Sequence record: ON529852.1
Strand: one strand, 5' to 3'
Length of the DNA: 64,000 nt
The position numbers and the translations under genes were made by a program. Under the pieces are notes generated by a model. That model did not search any database and was not told where the DNA came from. It saw only the letters and a list, made by a program, of their open reading frames with translations. Shown here piece by piece: positions 2,145 to 25,686 of this stretch; positions within the stretch are counted from its first letter, which is position 1; each line of letters starts with the position of its first letter.

Positions 2145-5100
2145 TTAGCTGAGGTTCCGGGTCGAGGCCCGCTTGAGGTCCCGGTTCTGCTGACGCTGGA
2201 TCGAGCCCTGCGACTTGCGGAAGGCGTCCGGGTTGGGCGCGATGACCGTGATGTTCGACGTCACGTTGGCGCCGCCCGAGGGAACATTGCCCATGTCGAC
2301 CGGAACCGCCCGACCGTTCGGCAGGGGGATGATGGCTTCGTTCGGGTGAACGATCGCCGGCATGCCGCCGTTGGAGGTGTTGGCGGTGCCCACGTCGTAG
2401 TGCGGCGCCTTGCCCCAGTCCATGCCGGCGTTCGAGACATAGCCGCCGTCGGCGAACTGTTTCATGACGCCGGACGCCATTTCCATGTAGGTCCCCACCT
2501 TACCCCAGGTGCCGCCGGTCAAAATGTTGGCCCCGAAGTTGATCACATCCGCGATCGGGTTGGAATGAGCGGCGATGGCGGTGGCGTCCACGGTCACGCC
2601 ACGATGCTCGCCGATGACGCCCTTGACGGCCTCGGGGTCCTTCTCAGGAGCCTTTTCCTTCTTGAACAGGTCCGCCAGGGTGCTGATCAGGGCCGCGCCT
2701 TGCATGAAGCCTGCGCCCCGCTCTTCCATGGTCCGCCCCTTGCCGAACATCTCACCGACGAACGACAGCGGACTATCCGGCTTGCCGTTCTTGCCGCGTC
2801 CGAAGACGTTCGACATGGTCGGCTTGGTGAACTTCTCGCCGAAGTTGGTCTTGGCCGAGGAGAGCATGTCGGAGAACCAACCGCCGCCCGCGAAGCCGGG
2901 GAGGCCGTCGACCAGGCCGCCGTTGGCGTAGGCCTTGCCGTTGTTGATCGCTTCAAGGAGGGCGCGATTCTGCGACGTCGCCGCCGCGTTGATGACGAAC
3001 TCGCCGTTGGACAGCCGGGCGTTGATGTCGTCCGAGCGCGGGCCGCCGCGCCCCGAGACATAGCCGCCGTCCGCGTAGAGACCGGTCAGGTCCGGGGCGA
3101 ACGACTTGCCCTCGAAGGTGAACCCTTCGGTGGCGTCGCCCAGACTCGGCTTGGCGCTAGGCTTAGCGTCGCCCTTGCCGCCGCCTTTCGCCATTACAGC
3201 CGCTGCTTTTTCCAGCTTTTTGACGGCTTCCCCAAAGGCTTCGACCTGGGTCTTGAAACCTTCGGCCGCCGTGTTGAAGGTCGTGGGGACCTGCATCAAC
3301 ATCTGCGCCGCCGTATACAGCGCCGTCGCGGCTTGATCGTAACCGGCGCCGGCGTCGTCTCCGGACAGCATGACAGGGCCAGCGGAAGGAGCCGTCCCCA
3401 TGGAGGACGTCGTGGACATCCGCTTCGTGGTTTCGCTCGTGGGGCTGGTCTCGCCGCCGATGAGATTGAAGGCCTTGCGCCAGAGCGGAGTCGTGTCGCG
3501 CTCTGCCCCGAGACCGTGCGGCGTGGCGGGGGCGTGCCCCTGAACGGCGCGGGCCGGAGTCATGCGGCCGAGCGACGACATGATCGGGCGCAAGCTGACC
3601 GGCGCCATCGGGTCCATGACCTCGCCGCCCAGCGCCGGCGACTTCAGGCCGAGCGACGTCATCGTGCGGTCCATCAGGCCCTGCACGTAATCCAGGGGTC
3701 CTGCGGGCGCCGCCGCAACAGCGGGGGCGGGCTTGTTGAGCAGGCCCGTCGAGATGGCGCCCGAACGCACGCCGCCGGCGTGATTCAGGGTGCTCTCAGC
3801 GGTGGTGTTCAACACGCGAGAGATGGCGCCGTCGGGATCGAAATAGGCGGCGATCGTCTTCAGTGCATTCGCTGCGTCGGTCAGGGCCTTGACCTCGGCG
3901 TTGATCGCATCCTGCTGATTCTTCTGAGCGTCGACCAACGCTTGCTGGGCCGCCAGGTCCGACTGCGCGTCTGCCTTGGTCTTGTCGATCATCGCCACGG
4001 CGGCGTTATACTGAGCCGTCGCCGCCTCCAGCCCGGCTTGCGCCTCCGAGCCAGGCTTCTTGACGCCCATGACGCCGAGCATGCCGCTGAGCGCGTCATC
4101 CACCGTCGCCTTCACGATCTGACGCCGGATGTTCTTGAACATCGCCTGCCAATCGACGTCTTCGCCCATCAGTTCATCGGTGATGCCGTCCGAGAGGCCT
4201 TCCATGAAGGCGCCCTTGATGTTTTCCATGCGTCGGGCGAACGGCTCCAGGCCGTCGACCCAGGCTGCGAATCCGGGCGGGTTCTCGATGGTGTGGCGGG
4301 CTTCAGCCAGGGTCTTCGCCAGCTTCGCCATGACAGGCTCCGCCGCTTCAAGCTGCGCCAGGGTCGCGTTCGGCATGTTCGTCAGATCGCGCAGGATGTC
4401 GCGATACGAGGCGCGGTATCCGCGCATCGTCTTGTCCGTCGCCGAGTCGATGCCGTCGCTCAGTTCGACGATGATCGAACGCAGGGACTCAGCCTGATCC
4501 GACATGGCCTGCACGTCGGCCGTGCGGGACAGCGCCGTCAACAGAGCCGGGTTGGCCTCGACCTGGGCGCGCTTCTGATCGAAAGTGCCGCCTTGGACCG
4601 ACTGGTTGATCAAGTCGTTCAGGTAGGTGTCGCGATTGGACACGACGCCGCTGGCCTTGCCGACGCGCATCTGCGCTTCGTTCAAGGTGTCCATCAGGCG
4701 AACCTGGGCTTCCAGGGCCTTGGTGCGGTCGCGCTCCATTTCCCACTGCTGGCGCGCCGTGTTCAGGCTTTCGACCTGAATGTCCTTGCCGGTCAGTCTC
4801 AGGCCGTTGACGTGTTCCGTCCACTTGGCCTCGTCCTGCATCAACTCGATCGGGTAGCCCTGCTCCTTCATCTCATTGATGCGCTCCTGCCACTCGGCCT
4901 CCTTGCCCATGCCTTGCAGGGTCTTGAGCGTCAGGTCGTTGGTTTCGCGCGCCAGGCGGTTCGCCTTGGAGACGGGGTTCATCGCGTCTTGCAGTTCCTT
5001 CGCCTGACGGGCGATGGCGGCCGAGATTTGGTCGCGAATCGGCGAGGTCACGAGCGCGGCGTTCGGACCGTTCTTCTTGCGCAGTTCCTCATCCGCAGCG

Positions 5101-16921: not shown

Positions 16922-17002
16922 TGGCGGGGACGGAGGGAATCGAACCCCCTGGATGACGCCTTCGGAGGGCGTTGCCTACATTCCGGTCGGCACTTCGCCC
17001 CC
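16922..17002 (-). tRNA. tRNA-Arg(CCG), atypical D arm
   Basis: GGGGGCG/CGTCCCC acceptor, ACGCC-CTCCGAA-GGCGT, GGTTCGATTCC, CCA. Confidence 0.8.
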
Positions 17003-17035: not shown

Positions 17036-17117
17036 TGGCGCCCAAGGCAGGATTTGAACCTGCGTTTGCAACTCCGCTACGGATAAGGCCTTCGTAGGAC
17101 CCCTCGGTTACTTGGGC
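17036..17117 (-). tRNA. tRNA-Arg(ACG)-like, no D stem, branched variable region
   Basis: GCCCAAG/CTTGGGC acceptor, GGGTC-CTACGAA-GGCCT, T arm GCAGG-TTCAAAT-CCTGC, CCA. Confidence 0.6.
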
Positions 17118-17592: not shown

Positions 17593-17605
17593 ACACAGAA
17601 AAGTG

Positions 17606-17680
17606 TGGCCCACCCAGGAGCGCTCGCATCTCCGTCTCGGGGATTTCACTCCCGCGCTAATCTGTCTCAGCTATGAGTGG
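17606..17680 (-). tRNA. tRNA-Phe(GAA), divergent
   Basis: CGGGA-GTGAAAT-CCCCG; weak T arm; CCA. Confidence 0.7.
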
Positions 17681-17681
17681 G

Positions 17682-17765
17682 TGGTGGGAAGGGAGAGAAT
17701 TCGCACTCTCACAGCTTGCGCGGGGGATTTACAGTCCCTTGGGCTCACTCGTGCCCAGCCTGCCC
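17682..17765 (-). tRNA. tRNA-Tyr(GTA)
   Basis: AGGGA-CTGTAAA-TCCCC; class II variable arm; CCA. Confidence 0.9.
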
Positions 17766-17832
17766 AAAATGTTACGGCTCAGTCGCCGCCGGTCATGGTG
17801 ATCTCCTGGATCAGATGAAGGTGTTGAAACGG

Positions 17833-17868
17833 AAAAGGCCCGCCTGGCGGAAACCAGGCGGGCCTTCG
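17833..17868 (-). terminator. Intrinsic terminator (attenuator) upstream of tRNA array 1
   Basis: GAAGGCCCGCCTGG-TTTCCG-CCAGGCGGGCC followed by TTTT. Confidence 0.8.
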
Positions 17869-17897
17869 AAACTTGGGAGTTCTAAGTGGGTATCAGA

Positions 17898-17993
17898 TCA
17901 AATCTGCGTCCCACCATCGCCCATGCACGAATGGCCCGCCCGGTTAAACCGGACGACCTGAATTTGCTGCACGTTGTTGCGATAGGTGAACAT
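17898..17993 (-). CDS. Leader peptide 1, MFTYRNNVQQIQVVRFNRAGHSCMGDGGTQI (probably leaderless mRNA)
   Basis: ATG lies 7 nt after the -10 box; 16 of codons 2-18 are read by array-1 tRNAs. Confidence 0.8.
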   Translation of the reverse strand: MFTYRNNVQQIQVVRFNRAGHSCMGDGGTQI

Positions 17994-18000
17994 GAGAAGA

Positions 18001-18029
18001 CGTTTACTACAGGCGGCGACCAGTGTCAA
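18001..18029 (-). promoter_or_regulatory. Promoter of leader 1 / tRNA array 1
   Basis: TTGACA-17-TAAACG. Confidence 0.6.
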
Positions 18030-21618: not shown

Positions 21619-21856
21619 ATAAGTTGGCAGGAGTTTTCAGATATGGCGAACCATACCCAGGGCGACCCTCCTGCCAGGAACCCCCGTCTCGGTTTCTTTC
21701 ACTGGCCCCGACACGAGCACCTGTCAAAGCCTATCTAGCCGCCAGGCTTGCGGAACGTCACGGGCGATTAGGCGCCTCGGGATGAACAGCGTTGCGGACG
21801 GCGTAGCATCGGCTTGCCGTGATTACTGGCAGACGGCGCCACTGGTGTCAACAATG

Positions 21857-21887
21857 AAAAACGCCCCGACCTTTCGATCGGGGCGTT
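21857..21887 (-). terminator. Intrinsic terminator
   Basis: AACGCCCCGATC-GAAA-GGTCGGGGCG followed by TTTTT. Confidence 0.8.
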
Positions 21888-21889
21888 CT

Positions 21890-22201
21890 TCACAGGTTCG
21901 TCATCCACTGCTTGCGGCAGCGGGTGTGATCCTTCCAGGACTTGCCGCCAGGACGCGACGCCATGAGGTCGTCGTAGGACGAGGGAAGGATCATGCGGCG
22001 CCCACGAGCGCGGTAGAGGCGGTCGTGGGCCTCGCCGGTGTTGCGCCGCCGCTCCTGCATGGTGCGGGGACAGCGGTGCATGTGACGCCAGCGGTGGCGG
22101 AAGCGCCGGCAGCGGTAGGGTTCGCCGGGCTCCAGGTAGAGGACGCGCCAGCCCACGAAGTAGAAGCCGGAGTGGGTGACGCGTTCGAATTGGGGCTTCA
22201 T
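21890..22201 (-). CDS. Basic hypothetical protein (103 aa)
   Basis: GGAGG upstream; LPSSYDD...KSWK...KQW pattern recalled from other phage ORFs. Confidence 0.65.
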   Translation of the reverse strand: MKPQFERVTHSGFYFVGWRVLYLEPGEPYRCRRFRHRWRHMHRCPRTMQERRRNTGEAHDRLYRARGRRMILPSSYDDLMASRPGGKSWKDHTRCRKQWMTNL

Positions 22202-22301
22202 GTCAGCCTCCTGCTAGGTTGAGTACCTAGCGGGTGCTGTATTCCAGGTAGAACTTGATCATGGGATCATCCTAGCCCAAGCGGGGCTGTTCGTCCAGGA
22301 A

Positions 22302-22390
22302 TGGCGGATGGGGCAGGGATCGAACCCGCGTAACCCTTTCGGGTGTCGACCGCTTAGCAAGCGGCTGCCTTACCTCTCGGCCACCCATCC
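22302..22390 (-). tRNA. tRNA-Ser(GCT)
   Basis: CCGC-TTGCTAA-GCGG; long variable arm; CCA. Confidence 0.95.
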
Positions 22391-22397
22391 GGGGTGT

Positions 22398-22482
22398 TGG
22401 CGGTGCGCCAGGGAATCGAACCCTCAACCTTGCGGTCGGCGACGGTTTTCAAGGCCGCTTGTCCCCATGGACGCTGCGCACC
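22398..22482 (-). tRNA. tRNA-Ser(TGA)
   Basis: Loop CTTGAAA; class II; CCA. Confidence 0.9.
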
Positions 22483-22487
22483 GAAGG

Positions 22488-22578
22488 TGGCGGACGGCAC
22501 GCGATTCGAACGCGTGGGACCCAGGGGGTCCGCCTGCCTTCCAAGCAGGTGCCTTAAGCCGGGCTCAGCCAGCCGTCC
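22488..22578 (-). tRNA. tRNA-Ser(GGA)
   Basis: CCTGC-TTGGAAG-GCAGG; class II; CCA. Confidence 0.92.
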
Positions 22579-22583
22579 GGTGT

Positions 22584-22801
22584 TGGTGGAGGCGAGGGGA
22601 TTCGAACCCCCGTAGACGCCGAACCCTCGCATTACCAAGGGCCGATCTCAGGTTTAGAACGCGTGTGCCGCCCTGACCATCTTCCGCAGGCCAGGGGGTC
22701 TATCGTAACGACCCCGTCGATCGGTTGCCTCTGCGTCCCGGATTTACCCGGACCGTTGCTCTGTTCCACGGTGCTCATGCCGAAACCCGAGCGACGCCCC
22801 C
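22584..22801 (-). ncRNA. ssrA: Compact one-piece tmRNA
   Basis: 5' GGGGGCG pairs with 3' CGCCTCC-ACCA giving G3.U70; GGGTTTCGGC D-loop analog; T arm GGGGG-TTCGAAT-CCCCT; internal GCA-start frame 22734..22654. Confidence 0.8.
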
Positions 22802-22810
22802 GTGAAGATA

Positions 22811-22898
22811 TGGAGGATGGTGTGGGATTCGAACCCACGGAACCTTGCGGTCCACCGGTTTTCGAAACCGGCGCGATCGGCCTCTCCGCCAACCATCC
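22811..22898 (-). tRNA. tRNA-Ser(CGA)
   Basis: CCGGT-TTCGAAA-ACCGG; class II; CCA. Confidence 0.93.
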
Positions 22899-22905
22899 AG
22901 AACAG

Positions 22906-23094
22906 TCAGGCCGAGGCCGGACTGTAGTTGTCGATGTCGTCGACCCGGATCGCCGTGCCCGCCGCAATCTGGCGGTCGGCGCTCAACAGTTCGGCGACCA
23001 GGTCGTCGGCCGTGACGGCGGAGCCGGAGGTGGCGAACTTCACGTTCACCAGGCGGCCGTCAGCGAACATCTCGTCGATCGCGGCGCGATCCAT
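22906..23094 (-). CDS. Hypothetical protein inside tRNA array (62 aa, MDRAAIDEMF...)
   Basis: AGAAAGG upstream; fills the gap between tRNA-Ala and tRNA-Ser. Confidence 0.6.
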   Translation of the reverse strand: MDRAAIDEMFADGRLVNVKFATSGSAVTADDLVAELLSADRQIAAGTAIRVDDIDNYSPASA

Positions 23095-23127
23095 GATAGA
23101 CCTTTCTGCCGGCCTCGCCGGCGGTGA

Positions 23128-23198
23128 TGGTGGAGACAGTGGGGCTCGAACCCACCAAGGCTTCCTTGCAAAGGATGCCTGCGCCCTGCGCTGTCCCC
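23128..23198 (-). tRNA. tRNA-Ala(TGC), 3-nt D loop
   Basis: G3.U70; loop TTTGCAA; D arm GCGC-AGG-GCGC. Confidence 0.88.
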
Positions 23199-23235
23199 TT
23201 AGGGGTTGAGTGCCAGCCATGCTGACAATCAGTGT

Positions 23236-23311
23236 TGGTCCTGGCACTCAGATTCGAACTGAGCCATCGTGCTCCACAAACACGCGCCTCCACCGCAGAG
23301 GCTTTACCAGG
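23236..23311 (-). tRNA. tRNA-His(GTG), no G-1, A73
   Basis: CGTGT-TTGTGGA-GCACG; CCTGGTA/TGCCAGG acceptor. Confidence 0.88.
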
Positions 23312-23313
23312 GT

Positions 23314-23401
23314 TGGTCGCGACGACAGGGATCGAACCTGCCCGGCCTTTCGGCCACTACCACCTCAAGGTAGCGCGTCTACCAGACTCCGCCACGTCGC
23401 G
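23314..23401 (-). tRNA. tRNA-Leu(GAG)
   Basis: CTACC-TTGAGGT-GGTAG; class II. Confidence 0.93.
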
Positions 23402-23410
23402 ATCGAATGT

Positions 23411-23496
23411 TGGTGCCCGTCCCCGGACTCGAACCGGGACGCCGCGAGGGCCACGCCTTTTGAGGGCGCTGCGTCTACCTTTCCGTCCAGACGGGC
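23411..23496 (-). tRNA. tRNA-Leu(CAA)
   Basis: GCGCC-CTCAAAA-GGCGT; class II. Confidence 0.93.
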
Positions 23497-23506
23497 AGTT
23501 GAAAAA

Positions 23507-23592
23507 TGGTGCGGGCGAGAGGATTCGAACCTCCCCGGCACAAGGCCACGAGTACCTGAGACTCGCGCGGCTACCAACTTCGCCACGCCCGC
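23507..23592 (-). tRNA. tRNA-Leu(CAG)
   Basis: CGAGT-CTCAGGT-ACTCG; class II. Confidence 0.93.
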
Positions 23593-23596
23593 ATTT

Positions 23597-23678
23597 TGGA
23601 GAACCCTGGTGGAGTCGAACCACTTGCGCCTGGATTAAAAGCCCAATCCCGGCCACCCGGATTTAACGCTCAAGGTCC
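23597..23678 (-). tRNA. tRNA-Lys(TTT), atypical D region
   Basis: TTGGG-CTTTTAA-TCCAG; displaced D hairpin TCCGG-GTGG-CCGGG. Confidence 0.75.
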
Positions 23679-23691
23679 CCTAAAGTTATGT

Positions 23692-23782
23692 TGGTGAACG
23701 TGGTCGGACTCGCACCGACGATGAAGGTTGTAACCTAACGGGATTAAGAGCCCCGGCCTCTCGCTACTGAGGTGACACGTCC
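23692..23782 (-). tRNA. tRNA-Lys(CTT) with long variable arm
   Basis: CGGGG-CTCTTAA-TCCCG; variable AGGT-TACA-ACCT; T loop TGCGAGT. Confidence 0.85.
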
Positions 23783-23818
23783 AAAACTGTTGTTCTTCTC
23801 CTGAAGACTTGATATGGA

Positions 23819-23889
23819 TGGAGCCGGCGGACGGTGTCGAACCGTCCCATGTCCACTACGAAAGGTCAGCCCTGCCACCAGGCGCCGGC
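23819..23889 (-). tRNA. tRNA-Thr(CGT), weak anticodon stem
   Basis: G1-C72/C2-G71 Thr identity; loop TT-CGT-AG with only 3 WC pairs in the stem; ACG occurs three times in leader 2. Confidence 0.65.
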
Positions 23890-23895
23890 GTTGTT

Positions 23896-23966
23896 TGGTG
23901 CCAAGGGAGGGAGTCAAACCCTCGCTGAACCCATACCAAGGGCTCGACCGATCACCCGGCCTTGGC
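23896..23966 (-). tRNA. tRNA-Thr(GGT)
   Basis: AGCCC-TTGGTAT-GGGTT; CCA. Confidence 0.85.
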
Positions 23967-23978
23967 GTTGATGTTAGT

Positions 23979-24053
23979 TGGTCGGAACACCAGGATTCGA
24001 ACCTGGGACCCCTAGCTTCCCGAGCCAGTGCGCTACCGCTGCGCTACATTCCG
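23979..24053 (-). tRNA. tRNA-Pro(GGG)
   Basis: CTGGC-TCGGGAA-GCTAG (C33); CCA. Confidence 0.9.
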
Positions 24054-24062
24054 AGTTGATGA

Positions 24063-24139
24063 TGGTCGGCGAGGGAGGATTCGAACCTCCGATCCCTCCG
24101 ACCCGAACGGAGTGACTTACCAGACTTGCCCACACGCCG
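24063..24139 (-). tRNA. tRNA-Pro(CGG)
   Basis: CTCCG-TTCGGGT-CGGAG; CCA. Confidence 0.93.
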
Positions 24140-24148
24140 ATGGAAACG

Positions 24149-24183
24149 AAAAAAAGGCCCCGGAGGCTTTGCGCCTGGGGCCT
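24149..24183 (-). terminator. Intrinsic terminator (attenuator) 10 nt upstream of tRNA array 2
   Basis: AGGCCCCAGGC-GCAA-AGCCTCCGGGGCC followed by TTTTTTT. Confidence 0.85.
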
Positions 24184-24255
24184 GAAACATCTGCTGTTTT
24201 GGGGTTCAGCAGGTGATCGGCCCCTTAGGGCGCCTCACCTGCTTGGTGCCTGTTG

Positions 24256-24387
24256 TTACAGGAAACCTTCCAGGGAGACGCCACCGGTGGTGGGGGACTT
24301 CGTCGACAGTTTCGGCGCATGCGCGAGCGTCGACAGCGCCGTGGCGGCGGTCGAAAGCGGGCTCAGCTTGTGCGACAAGGTGGTCAC
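24256..24387 (-). CDS. Leader peptide 2, MTTLSHKLSPLSTAATALSTLAHAPKLSTKSPTTGGVSLEGFL
   Basis: GTG start; codons 2-34 are all T/L/S/H/K/P/A, exactly the amino acids of array-2 tRNAs. Confidence 0.82.
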   Translation of the reverse strand: MTTLSHKLSPLSTAATALSTLAHAPKLSTKSPTTGGVSLEGFL

Positions 24388-24440
24388 GATGAAGGTCCAG
24401 TCCGAAGAAGGAGCGCAAGTGCGCTGTGATGAAGTCTGAT

Positions 24441-24469
24441 CTTCTACAGGAAGCTTGAGCGTATGTCAA
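24441..24469 (-). promoter_or_regulatory. Promoter of leader 2 / tRNA array 2
   Basis: TTGACA-17-TAGAAG. Confidence 0.7.
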
Positions 24470-24653
24470 GAACTTCAGAAGAAAAAAAGTTGAGGAGCGA
24501 TGTGTGCGTCCCGCTCGAAACGTCTTGTGCCAGGATCAACGGCAGACGTCAACAGGAAAATGCACGCGCGCGGCCGAGGGGGAGCGGAAGACCGCGCGCG
24601 TGCCGGCAGACCGTCGGGGGACGGGGCCTGGGGTCGTCGGGGGACGGGGAGGG

Positions 24654-24890
24654 TCAGCCGGCGCGGCGCTTGAGCGTCTCGTGCAGCGGCGGATAGGGGA
24701 CCGGGGCGTAGATCACCTCGACCAGGCGAGGGCGGCGGCCGGTGCGGATTTTGGCAGGCAGGGGCACGTTGCGGCGCCGCAGTTCGGCGGCGGCGGCGGC
24801 GCTCGCCAGGGAGCCCGACAGGTAGACGCCGATCAGTTCAGCGACCGTCAGGGTCATCATGCGCTGGGCGCGGGTGGTGTTGTGAGCCAC
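24654..24890 (-). CDS. Hypothetical protein (78 aa)
   Basis: GGAGA upstream. Confidence 0.5.
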   Translation of the reverse strand: MAHNTTRAQRMMTLTVAELIGVYLSGSLASAAAAAELRRRNVPLPAKIRTGRRPRLVEVIYAPVPYPPLHETLKRRAG

Positions 24891-25409: not shown

Positions 25410-25475
25410 TTAGGCGGCGGTCGTATCTCGGCCCTGGAAGGCCTCTCGTTCGTAGCTGGTCAGACGGTAGGTCAT
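25410..25475 (-). CDS. Possible leader peptide 3, MTYRLTSYEREAFQGRDTTAA
   Basis: ATG 6 nt after TTGACA-17-TACAAG; precedes Glu/Asp tRNAs. Confidence 0.45.
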   Translation of the reverse strand: MTYRLTSYEREAFQGRDTTAA

Positions 25476-25506
25476 TTGTCGCTTGTATCAGAACTGTCGG
25501 TGGGTG

Positions 25507-25686
25507 TCAAGAAGGACGGCGAATCTTTTTGGACCTTGCATGGGGTCGGTCTTCCTCGGCCTCAGGCTCGGCCGCGTCCCAGGCCATCCACAGGGCCGCG
25601 AGAAAAGCAGGCGGACCCATCAAGTCTTCCAACCGCTTCAAGGCCCGGTCGTTGGCCGCCAGGAAGGCGTCGCCGTATTCAAGCAT
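25507..25686 (-). CDS. Hypothetical protein (59 aa, MLEYGDAF..., absent from ORF track)
   Basis: GAGG SD, phage-like codon use. Confidence 0.6.
   Translation of the reverse strand: MLEYGDAFLAANDRALKRLEDLMGPPAFLAALWMAWDAAEPEAEEDRPHARSKKIRRPS

Follow-up and report, generated by a model that had tools for sequence, protein, structure and literature searches.

Closest Described Systems

The closest described systems are the classical ribosome-mediated attenuators, of which trpL, hisL, thrL, leuL, ilvL, and pheL govern amino-acid operons and pheM governs pheST. Multivalent precedents exist, as thrL responds to two amino acids (Thr and Ile) and ilvL to three (Leu, Val, and Ile). A classical leader combines a short open reading frame (ORF) rich in sensor codons, an intrinsic terminator before the first regulated gene and an antiterminator that excludes this terminator, and the position of the ribosome decides between the two. 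The element studied here shares these parts, the decision by the ribosome being predicted. It lies 5' of a cluster of tRNA genes, denoted array 2, in the Brevundimonas jumbo phage vB_BpoS-Kabachok (356 kb, Dolichocephalovirinae). We analyzed a stretch of 64 kb of its sequence record ON529852.1, referred to as the window, where a window coordinate equals the record coordinate minus 248000. In the alphaproteobacterium Sinorhizobium, a trpL attenuator has been described (PMC7968998).

We put the probability that the array-2 leader acts as a ribosome-mediated transcription attenuator of a phage tRNA operon at roughly 0.7. Probably, the phage makes the array-2 tRNAs only when ribosomes run short of them. 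The comparative evidence presented below supports a real and new form of ribosome-mediated attenuation, built on the trp/his/thr/ilv principle. The phage leaders are viral and would regulate tRNA genes, whereas the classical attenuators regulate biosynthetic or synthetase genes; here, the product sensed would be the product made. The sensor of array 2 comprises 33 codons for seven amino acids (eight in the phage Lacusarx, see below), in contrast to the short run for one to three amino acids in classical leaders. Furthermore, the array-2 version adds a segment 0 which opposes a hairpin A, and its computed default in the absence of a ribosome is read-through instead of super-attenuation. The leader of a second Kabachok array, array 1, shares the textbook 1:2, 2:3, 3:4 layout of the classical attenuators. 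If the attenuation reading is true, the element would be the first attenuator known to us whose regulated product is the sensed molecule itself, and the most multivalent one, with seven to eight amino acids.

T-boxes are similar in that they couple the supply of charged tRNA to the choice between terminator and antiterminator 5' of translation-related genes. They bind uncharged tRNA via a specifier loop and a conserved T-box sequence, without translation, with one tRNA each, and mainly in Firmicutes. The array-2 leader is not a T-box. The T-box model had no match at its gathering threshold anywhere in the window and none at E ≤ 1 within 21800-24700, and an Rfam scan at gathering and permissive thresholds found no family overlapping the leader (24149-24469). 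In mycobacteria, cysteine-responsive leaderless short ORFs (sORFs) attenuate downstream operons (bioRxiv 10.1101/834739). These are likewise amino-acid-enriched attenuators, and the array-1 leader likewise looks near-leaderless; they differ from the phage leaders in that they are cellular, respond to one amino acid, and act on protein-coding operons.

The reason for the presence of tRNA genes in phages, and the way in which they are controlled, is an open question. The usual explanations are that phage tRNAs compensate for codon usage, replace host tRNAs that have been degraded, or allow escape from anticodon nucleases. In the genome paper of the Caulobacter phage phiCbK, codon-usage compensation is the only role discussed, and neither a leader peptide nor attenuation is mentioned (PMC3556154). 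Thr and Tyr tRNAs are given there as absent from all phages covered, His as present only in Colossus, and Ala only in three (PMC3556154). In phiCbK, our relaxed searches revealed Thr, His, and Ala genes that resemble tRNAs, and 5' of tRNA-Phe a Tyr-GTA-like gene can be seen; codons for Thr, His, Ala, and Tyr are contained in the leaders. Terminators just 5' of tRNA-Glu, tRNA-Pro, and tRNA-Phe are already annotated in phiCbK. Literature searches yielded no earlier description of a tRNA-array attenuator of this kind.

The Array-2 Leader Peptide Matches Its Array

Four tRNA clusters were identified by ARAGORN (default and relaxed thresholds) in a minus-strand region of the window (Table 1). Array 2 encodes 15 tRNAs, which serve Pro, Thr, Lys, Leu, His, Ala, and Ser and no other amino acid, and an identical seven-amino-acid make-up was found in every genus examined. 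Default ARAGORN calls ten of the tRNAs, and relaxed thresholds add Thr-CGT, Lys-CTT, and Ser-TGA. The two remaining ones, Thr-GGT and Lys-TTT, are non-canonical and were accepted by eye, their anticodon loops being proper on inspection, and by homology to tRNAs called in the phages Bajun and Rogue. Matches to tRNA within array 2 were also obtained by the Rfam scan. An earlier note, made from the letters of this sequence, had counted 15 tRNAs for seven amino acids, a count borne out by these combined lines of evidence. The promoter, ORF, terminator, and pairing segments which it had placed upstream of the array were likewise all found in position on the minus strand.

The leader ORF has 43 codons. 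All 33 consecutive codons from 2 to 34 specify Thr, Leu, Ser, His, Lys, Pro, or Ala, i.e., the seven amino acids of array 2. No other run confined to this set is as long in any of the six frames of the window; the next two have 22 and 18 codons, and the run-length distribution approximately halves per step. The background share of the set, taken from the residues of long ORFs in the window, is 0.43. The match of amino acids between leader and array is not due to chance, in line with what the earlier note had proposed.

Two lines of reasoning were tried and rejected. G-depletion or C-richness as the only cause of the composition does not hold, as Ala (GCN) is frequent; the 11 non-NCN codons of the sensor all specify Leu, His, or Lys, and the G-free amino acids Asn, Ile, Gln, Tyr, and Phe do not occur in the array-2 leader, but constitute that of array 1. 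Neither was the openness of the ORF in all relatives accepted as evidence. In Kabachok, five of the six frames are without a stop over at least 129 nt of the leader stretch, and because this GC-rich stretch leaves most frames stop-free, an open frame is uninformative.

Conservation of the Leader among Relatives

Moving from Kabachok to its relatives, we aligned the leaders of five Brevundimonas phages (Kabachok, Bambus, Gurke, Kikimora, and Bajun), which share 70-89% identity. All five have the GTG start and the TAA stop at matching positions, and indels are mostly in frame, with a short frame-compensated stretch near the 3' end of the ORF in Bajun. Homologous sORFs are located 5' of the first tRNA-Pro in Caulobacter phages of four further genera (Rogue and BL10; phiCbK; Colossus and PW; SC). 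Start and stop of the leader are conserved in 11 phages. The ORF is annotated as a coding sequence (CDS) in Bajun, Rogue, BL10, phiCbK, and SC, and is assigned to PHROG 12742, of unknown function.

Between clades, the peptides share just 13-24 of about 43 residues. Their composition is preserved: throughout the 11 phages, representing at least five genera, 32-42 of 38-44 residues fall into the array-2 set (binomial P of 1e-7 to 1e-13, computed against the background of 0.43), and the array-1 set contributes only 1-4 residues. Within the Brevundimonas clade, approximately 16 of 17 replacements, counted by hand, remain in the set (e.g., Pro/His/Leu, Thr/Lys, and Leu/His), as compared with 46% expected of random single-nucleotide changes. 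SC alone has an array 2 that ends in tRNA-Trp, and its leader contains a Trp codon.

An IMG/VR search with the invariant 18-mer TGTCGCACAAGCTGAGCC returned one unrelated contig without tRNAs, a chance match inside a protein gene. The Rhizobium phages RHph_X66 and RHph_TM16 share no more than a tRNA; they are without arrays and therefore uninformative.

Promoter and Terminator

The sequence TTGACA-17-TAGAAG would serve as the promoter of the leader, as suggested by its rarity and its conservation. The motif TTGACA-N11-16-TGTRRDA occurs only twice in the window, namely in front of the array-2 and array-1 leaders, where 0.04 occurrences are expected by chance. The -35 element is kept in four of the five aligned phages and falls into a gap in Bajun, and sites of the type TTGACA-N12-TGTGAGAG are located 5' of the leaders in Rogue, phiCbK, Colossus, and SC. 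Further upstream, a distal promoter-like site is found with the hexamer TTGACG, which does not vary among the five Brevundimonas phages. Bajun has no proximal TTGACA, and there the distal site, TTGACG-N12-CGTGAGAC, is probably the sole promoter; tandem promoters may be present in Kabachok. In the 5' untranslated part of the leader, Gurke and Kikimora have a hairpin of other sequence at the position equivalent to that in Kabachok.

The terminator ends 10 nt before tRNA-Pro(CGG), which starts at 24139, and this gap leaves no space for a promoter of array 2's own. A simple terminator scan overlooked the structure because its stem is bulged. In the five-phage alignment, 98% of the cells of the stem are paired. 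Equivalent terminators are annotated directly 5' of tRNA-Pro in phiCbK, Swift, and Karma, and the terminator is conserved across the Brevundimonas, Poindextervirus, and Shapirovirus clades.

On the opposite strand, GenBank records a CDS, KABACHOK_04410, antisense to the leader ORF. It is unannotated in Bambus, Gurke, Kikimora, and Bajun, and probably represents a gene-caller artefact of GC-rich DNA.

A Second Matched Leader Precedes Array 1

The same window contains a second leader with the same order of promoter, ORF, terminator, and tRNAs. Array 1 comprises tRNAs for Tyr, Phe, Val, Ile, Val, Gln, Asn, Arg, and Arg, and the run YRNNVQQIQVVRFNR of its leader, 15 codons, is the longest of the window for the set Tyr/Phe/Val/Ile/Gln/Asn/Arg, followed by a run of 10. 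The ATG is only about 10 nt past the -10 element, so that the message would be nearly leaderless.

The ORF segment CCGGGCGGGCC is identical to the 3' arm of the terminator and can therefore pair with the 5' arm. It is also held in a hairpin with the preceding regulatory codons, which gives the classical 1:2, 2:3, 3:4 layout. Across seven phages, pairing of the 2:3 antiterminator amounts to 97%, with three compensatory pairs, as compared with 22-56% in slid controls, and its score was reached by four of 500 shuffles. Conservation of the element extends over Brevundimonas and Caulobacter phages.

A strong Shine-Dalgarno sequence and, after it, a five-codon mini-ORF, ATGACCGGCGGCGACTGA (MTGGD), were observed in the interval from the array-1 terminator to tRNA-Tyr. 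Its equivalent in Rogue, BL10, Colossus, and PW encodes MNNGG, and in SC an ATG-initiated frame enters the tRNA.

Leaders Follow a Different tRNA Grouping in Phage Lacusarx

The Sphingobium phage Lacusarx (KY629563, genus Lacusarxvirus) entered the comparison solely via a shared tRNA-Tyr-like sequence. Its tRNAs are grouped unlike those of Kabachok, and two of its three arrays have leaders that match the new grouping. Upstream of the array Ser, Tyr, Leu, Leu, Thr, His, Gln, Ser, Cys, Trp, a TTGACA promoter precedes the sORF MFTQTTLLTQCHYWQLLSSSSL, in which 20 of 21 residues after Met belong to the set of the array and all eight amino acids are represented. For the array Lys, Lys, Gly, Asp, Glu, Glu, Gly, Arg, Phe, the leader is MSQSALISFREKLTTMFTRFGKRDRREGERGFSL, which contains RFGKRDRREGERGF and has a 14-codon run in the set.

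When the four leaders of Kabachok arrays 2 and 1 and of these two Lacusarx arrays are scored against all four arrays, the diagonal stands out: runs for the own array are 33, 15, 14, and 20 codons, and all others are at most 7. In each of the four pairs, all amino acids of the array are present in its own leader. Between the Kabachok-type and the Lacusarx groups, five amino acids (Lys, Gln, Tyr, Arg, and Phe) have switched partners, and the leaders follow. The covariation of leader codons with array content, which the earlier note had raised, is thus found at the level of amino acids, and as judged by sequence, matched leaders extend beyond the Dolichocephalovirinae.

These four pairs bear on the alternative that the ORF encodes an ordinary small low-complexity phage protein, whose transcript is ended by a terminator that leaks into the tRNAs, the likeness to the tRNA set being incidental. 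The annotation as hypothetical protein in several phages and the existence of a PHROG family would suit such a protein, as would Ser/Thr/Ala/Pro-rich low-complexity runs of 15-22 residues elsewhere in the window. However, four independent leader-array pairs from two unrelated phage groups match their own array only, including the rare amino acids Cys, Trp, His, and Tyr; it is the composition that is conserved and not the sequence; and the short distance from terminator to tRNA leaves no room for a separate array promoter. We consider this alternative highly improbable.

Two Conserved RNA Conformations

For the RNA downstream of the sensor, the earlier note had proposed two exclusive pairing schemes, and these are energetically coherent: segment 0 paired with segment 1 plus the antiterminator amounts to -53.4 kcal/mol, versus -45.9 kcal/mol for hairpin A plus the terminator. 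The local fold from segment 0 to segment 1 (-30.7 kcal/mol) is present in the minimum-energy structure of the full leader. The antiterminator is the minimum-energy structure once segment 0 is free; with segment 0 under the ribosome, hairpin A plus the terminator is the sole favourable state according to the local energies.

Both conformations are conserved in the alignment of the five Brevundimonas phages. Pairing reaches 93% in the terminating state, which hardly varies. For the antiterminating state it is 80%, versus 33-51% in slid controls; seven pairs of this state are changed on both sides, a number not reached by any of 500 shuffles. Among the single helices, segment 0:segment 1 has 83% of its cells paired and hairpin A, nearly invariant in four phages and retained with changes in Bajun, 85-91%; the antiterminator helix, which is mutually exclusive with the terminator, has 89%, two pairs being changed on both sides. 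Rogue and phiCbK show the same four-helix logic with unrelated sequences. In Rogue, segment 0 GGCCTCGCAC pairs with GTGCAGGCC and the antiterminator is formed by GGAGCCGC and GCGGCTCC; the inner hairpin reveals a compensatory change between the two phages (CTACA/TGTAG in Rogue versus CAACA/TGTTG in phiCbK).

We computed the switch by a partition function in which, for a ribosome at each codon, only the RNA 3' of the ribosome is free to fold, a treatment by equilibrium thermodynamics. For Kabachok, the predicted probability of the terminator is about 0.3-0.4 for an upstream ribosome (to codon 33-34) and 0.9-0.98 from codon 35 to the stop. The earlier note had seen the amino-acid bias end at codon 35, where the pairing segments begin, and the computed switch is located exactly there. 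The corresponding values for a ribosome upstream in the ORF and at the ORF 3' end to the stop are 0 and 0.9 in Rogue, 0-0.4 and 0.8-0.9 in Colossus, 0.1-0.2 and 0.4 in Gurke, and about 0 in both positions in Bajun; Bambus changes from 0-0.4 upstream to 0.9 at the stop.

Evidence That Weighs against Attenuation

Several observations speak against the attenuation reading, some of them against the choice of codons, others against translation, generality, or the switch itself. The earlier note had claimed a readable codon for every isoacceptor of the array. This is true, yet it is expected from ordinary phage codon usage. A codon-level test conditioned on the leader peptide and the phage codon usage gave P values of 0.10, 0.20, and 0.33, where coverage of 13 anticodons by Watson-Crick pairing corresponds to P = 0.10 and coverage of all 15 by wobble to P = 0.20. 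Two GCC codons of the leader are unreadable by the sole Ala tRNA (anticodon TGC) under standard wobble. As anticodon coverage lies within the expectation from codon usage, we dropped the term isoacceptor-matched for amino-acid-matched.

With respect to translation, the ORF starts with GTG, and the Shine-Dalgarno-like element before it is weak. In addition, the first nine codons (27 nt) are nearly invariant at the nucleotide level within the Brevundimonas clade, without synonymous drift, which points to an extra constraint at the RNA or DNA level. These features, together with the many stop-free frames and the antisense ORF called in the Kabachok record in place of the leader ORF, would fit a structured 5' leader of the tRNA precursor that is not translated, or else a separate small RNA whose end is the terminator, with the ORF as an accident of GC-rich sequence. 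An untranslated RNA would, however, have no reason to hold one frame to the amino acids of the array in several genera, at two arrays, and in Lacusarx as well. The start and the stop are kept, indels preserve the frame or, in Bajun, are compensated, and the leader is matched by no Rfam family. We give this explanation very little credence.

Not every array has a convincing leader. The first Lacusarx array (L018, from tRNA-Pro 2619; Pro/Met/Val/Val/Ala/Asn/Ile) is without a clean matched leader. Kabachok array 4 (Trp/Gly/Gly) directly follows a 174-amino-acid CDS and lacks a clean leader as well, and the leader of array 3 (Glu/Asp) is a weak case.

Array 3 is preceded by a TTGACA promoter and a conserved sORF of 20-21 codons (Kabachok, MTYRLTSYEREAFQGRDTTAA; phiCbK, MTHLLTRYEREATGLDTTTA), of which just two specify Glu and one Asp. 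The 3' half of the phiCbK sORF is the 5' arm of the annotated terminator just before tRNA-Glu; in Kabachok the hairpin is present without a T-run. Array 3 may have a simpler attenuator of the occlusion type.

Other objections concern the RNA switch. In Bajun the antiterminator wins in every ribosome state, and the switch of Gurke is weak. When the 3' parts of the ORF were dinucleotide-shuffled, an equal or lower terminator probability than the native one was obtained in 14% (Kabachok), 52% (Bambus), 57% (Gurke), 13% (Rogue), and 5% (Colossus) of the trials. The computed switch was not significant in any one of these phages, and the specific pairing of segment 0 with segment 1 thus falls short of statistical proof. 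The switch simulation is compatible with the attenuation model; taken alone it gives no strong support, and we do not count it as primary evidence. Moreover, the terminator is weak in Colossus and PW (Colossusvirus), and SC has no T-run.

With these controls in mind, we considered that the sORF is a translated tRNA sensor with another output than the switch between hairpin A, antiterminator, and terminator, such as Rho loading on the C-rich ORF, RNase processing or precursor stability, or occlusion of the terminator, where the polarity could differ. The amino-acid match is much better supported than the specific RNA switch; SC, Colossus, and PW have kept a matched leader despite their terminators; Bajun and Gurke do not switch in the thermodynamic model; and the overlap of the array-3 sORF with its own terminator in phiCbK demonstrates a different geometry. 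Against another output stand the strong terminator that Kabachok, Rogue, and phiCbK have at a distance of 10 nt from the first tRNA, the conservation of both array-2 conformations, and the textbook layout with a covarying antiterminator in array 1. We regard such an output as unlikely, though less so than the two explanations discussed before, and retain attenuation via the terminator as the preferred reading.

A last objection concerns the signal. Amino-acid starvation would also stall the ribosome, and extra tRNA would be no help in this case.

Overall, the leader-peptide attenuator put forward in the earlier note is supported at the comparative level, by its conservation in 11 phages, by the array-1 replicate, and by the covariation in Lacusarx, whereas the isoacceptor match and the performance of the switch against shuffled controls do not speak for it.

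Proposed Mechanism and Its Implications

Transcription would begin at TTGACA-17-TAGAAG. We infer that the ORF is translated in coupling with transcription, and that a ribosome starting at the GTG (24387) has to read the 33 Thr/Leu/Ser/His/Lys/Pro/Ala codons. If all seven are supplied, the ribosome would proceed to codons 35-43 and the stop and cover segment 0, so that hairpin A locks GGGGCCGA. The terminator hairpin with its U7 could then form and, if termination is efficient, the transcript would end 10 nt short of the first tRNA. If any of the matched aminoacyl-tRNAs, the presumed physiological trigger, is scarce, the ribosome would stall upstream and leave segment 0 to open hairpin A by pairing with its 5' arm; GGGGCCGA, no longer locked, would capture the 5' arm of the terminator, TCAGGCCCC, and RNA polymerase would enter array 2. 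The new tRNAs would relieve the stall, which amounts to a negative feedback on tRNA supply. In the absence of a ribosome, the computed default leans to read-through.

The anti-defence rationale offered in the earlier note (PrrC, PARIS, retron) is a conjecture, and the data would fit demand-driven homeostasis in the course of phage protein synthesis just as well. On balance, we lean towards a general, hitherto unrecognized class of phage tRNA-supply sensors, in which each array is gated by a leader peptide written in its own amino acids, synthesis is driven by the translation demand of the phage or by tRNA loss inflicted by the host, and the grouping of the tRNAs is set by the controlling sensor.

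If the reading is true, phage tRNAs would be made on demand, in a feedback loop that gauges decoding capacity at the ribosome, and the partition of tRNA genes into conserved arrays by amino acid would be accounted for. The agreement of sORF composition with array content is a sequence signature for which phage genomes can be scanned, and the leaders could predict non-canonical tRNA genes overlooked by standard tools. They could also represent a compact natural sensor of multi-tRNA availability. As the model phage phiCbK carries the device in the same design, it is directly testable in Caulobacter crescentus, a standard laboratory system in which tests are straightforward.

Features of the Locus

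Table 1. Features of the Kabachok window and of related loci. Coordinates refer to the window unless another phage is named.
Feature	Coordinates	Strand	Remarks
tRNA cluster Trp/Gly/Gly (array 4)	26395-26137	-	
Array-3 leader	25410..25510	-	
tRNA cluster Glu/Asp (array 3)	25375-25192	-	
Distal promoter-like site	24521..24552	-	TTGACG 24552..24547
Promoter-like site	24441..24469	-	-35 TTGACA 24469..24464; 17-nt spacer; -10 TAGAAG 24446..24441; TG just 5' of -10
5' untranslated leader	24388..24440	-	small hairpin AGCGCACTTGCGCT, local fold -9.3 kcal/mol; Shine-Dalgarno-like GGA about 10 nt before GTG
KABACHOK_04410	24287..24439	+	antisense CDS in GenBank
Leader ORF	24256..24387	-	GTG start, 43 codons, TAA stop; encodes MTTLSHKLSPLSTAATALSTLAHAPKLSTKSPTTGGVSLEGFL
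Sensor segment, codons 2-34	24286..24384	-	Thr, Leu, Ser, His, Lys, Pro, Ala only
Segment 0, codons 36-39	24271..24282	-	GGCGTCTCCCTG; can pair with hairpin A 5' arm (anti-hairpin-A)
Segment 1	24229..24241	-	CAGGTGAGGCGCC; partner of segment 0
Hairpin A	24209..24242	-	GCAGGTGA...TCACCTGC; -25.0 kcal/mol; apical part sequesters GGGGCCGA (24224..24217)
Antiterminator	24177..24224	-	GGGGCCGA 24224..24217 : TCAGGCCCC 24185..24177; -22.7 kcal/mol including hairpin B
Hairpin B	24212..24207 : 24196..24191	-	CTGCTG : CAGCAG; enclosed by antiterminator
Intrinsic terminator	24149..24182	-	GGCCCCAGGCGCAAAGCCTCCGGGGCC + T7; bulged GC-rich stem GGCCCCAGGC/GCCTCCGGGGCC; -20.9 kcal/mol
Array 2	24139-22302	-	Pro-CGG, Pro-GGG, Thr-GGT, Thr-CGT, Lys-CTT, Lys-TTT, Leu-CAG, Leu-CAA, Leu-GAG, His-GTG, Ala-TGC, 62-aa CDS, Ser-CGA, tmRNA-like element, Ser-GGA, Ser-TGA, Ser-GCT
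Non-canonical array-2 tRNAs	Thr-GGT 23967..23894, Thr-CGT 23889..23819, Lys-CTT 23782..23692, Lys-TTT ~23680..23598, Ser-TGA 22482..22398	-	
KABACHOK_04330	22906..23094	-	62-aa CDS between tRNA-Ala and tRNA-Ser-CGA
tmRNA-like element	22584..22810	-	~225 nt, between Ser-CGA and Ser-GGA
Array-1 leader element	17833..18029	-	-35 TTGACA 18029..18024; -10 TAGTAA 18009..18004
Array-1 leader ORF	17993..17898	-	ATG, 31 codons; encodes MFTYRNNVQQIQVVRFNRAGHSCMGDGGTQI, beginning MFTYRNNVQQIQVVRFNR
Array-1 terminator	17864..17833	-	strong
Mini-ORF before tRNA-Tyr	17779..17807	-	Shine-Dalgarno AGGAG 17807..17803
Array 1	~17770-16922	-	
Non-canonical array-1 tRNAs	Tyr-GTA ~17769..17682, Phe-GAA-like ~17680..17600, Arg-CCT 17117..17036, Arg-CCG 16999..16922	-	
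Lacusarx sORFs behind TTGACA promoters	L015 1377..1481 and 2749..2817		one each for the Lys/Gly/Asp/Glu/Arg/Phe and Ser/Tyr/Leu/Thr/His/Gln/Cys/Trp arrays
phiCbK gp083 and the terminator after it	JX100813.1 49540-49677 and 49745-49769		
phiCbK array-3 sORF and terminator	L013 1238..1360		

Two elements other than tRNAs are located within array 2. The earlier note had listed a tmRNA in the array; the Rfam scan gave only a sub-threshold match at 22584-22715, with 32 bits versus a gathering score of 47. The surrounding element has tRNA-like ends, GGGGGCG...GGTTCGAATCCCCTCGCCTCCACCA, and relaxed ARAGORN calls a permuted tmRNA at the equivalent position in Rogue and BL10. The protein encoded by KABACHOK_04330 is conserved, acidic, and of unknown function, and would share its transcript with the array-2 tRNAs.

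The non-canonical tRNAs of Kabachok have short or expanded D arms and, in the case of tRNA-Lys, a long variable arm. They were missed by default ARAGORN, by Rfam at the gathering score, and by the GenBank annotation. Codons for all of their amino acids occur in the leader peptides.

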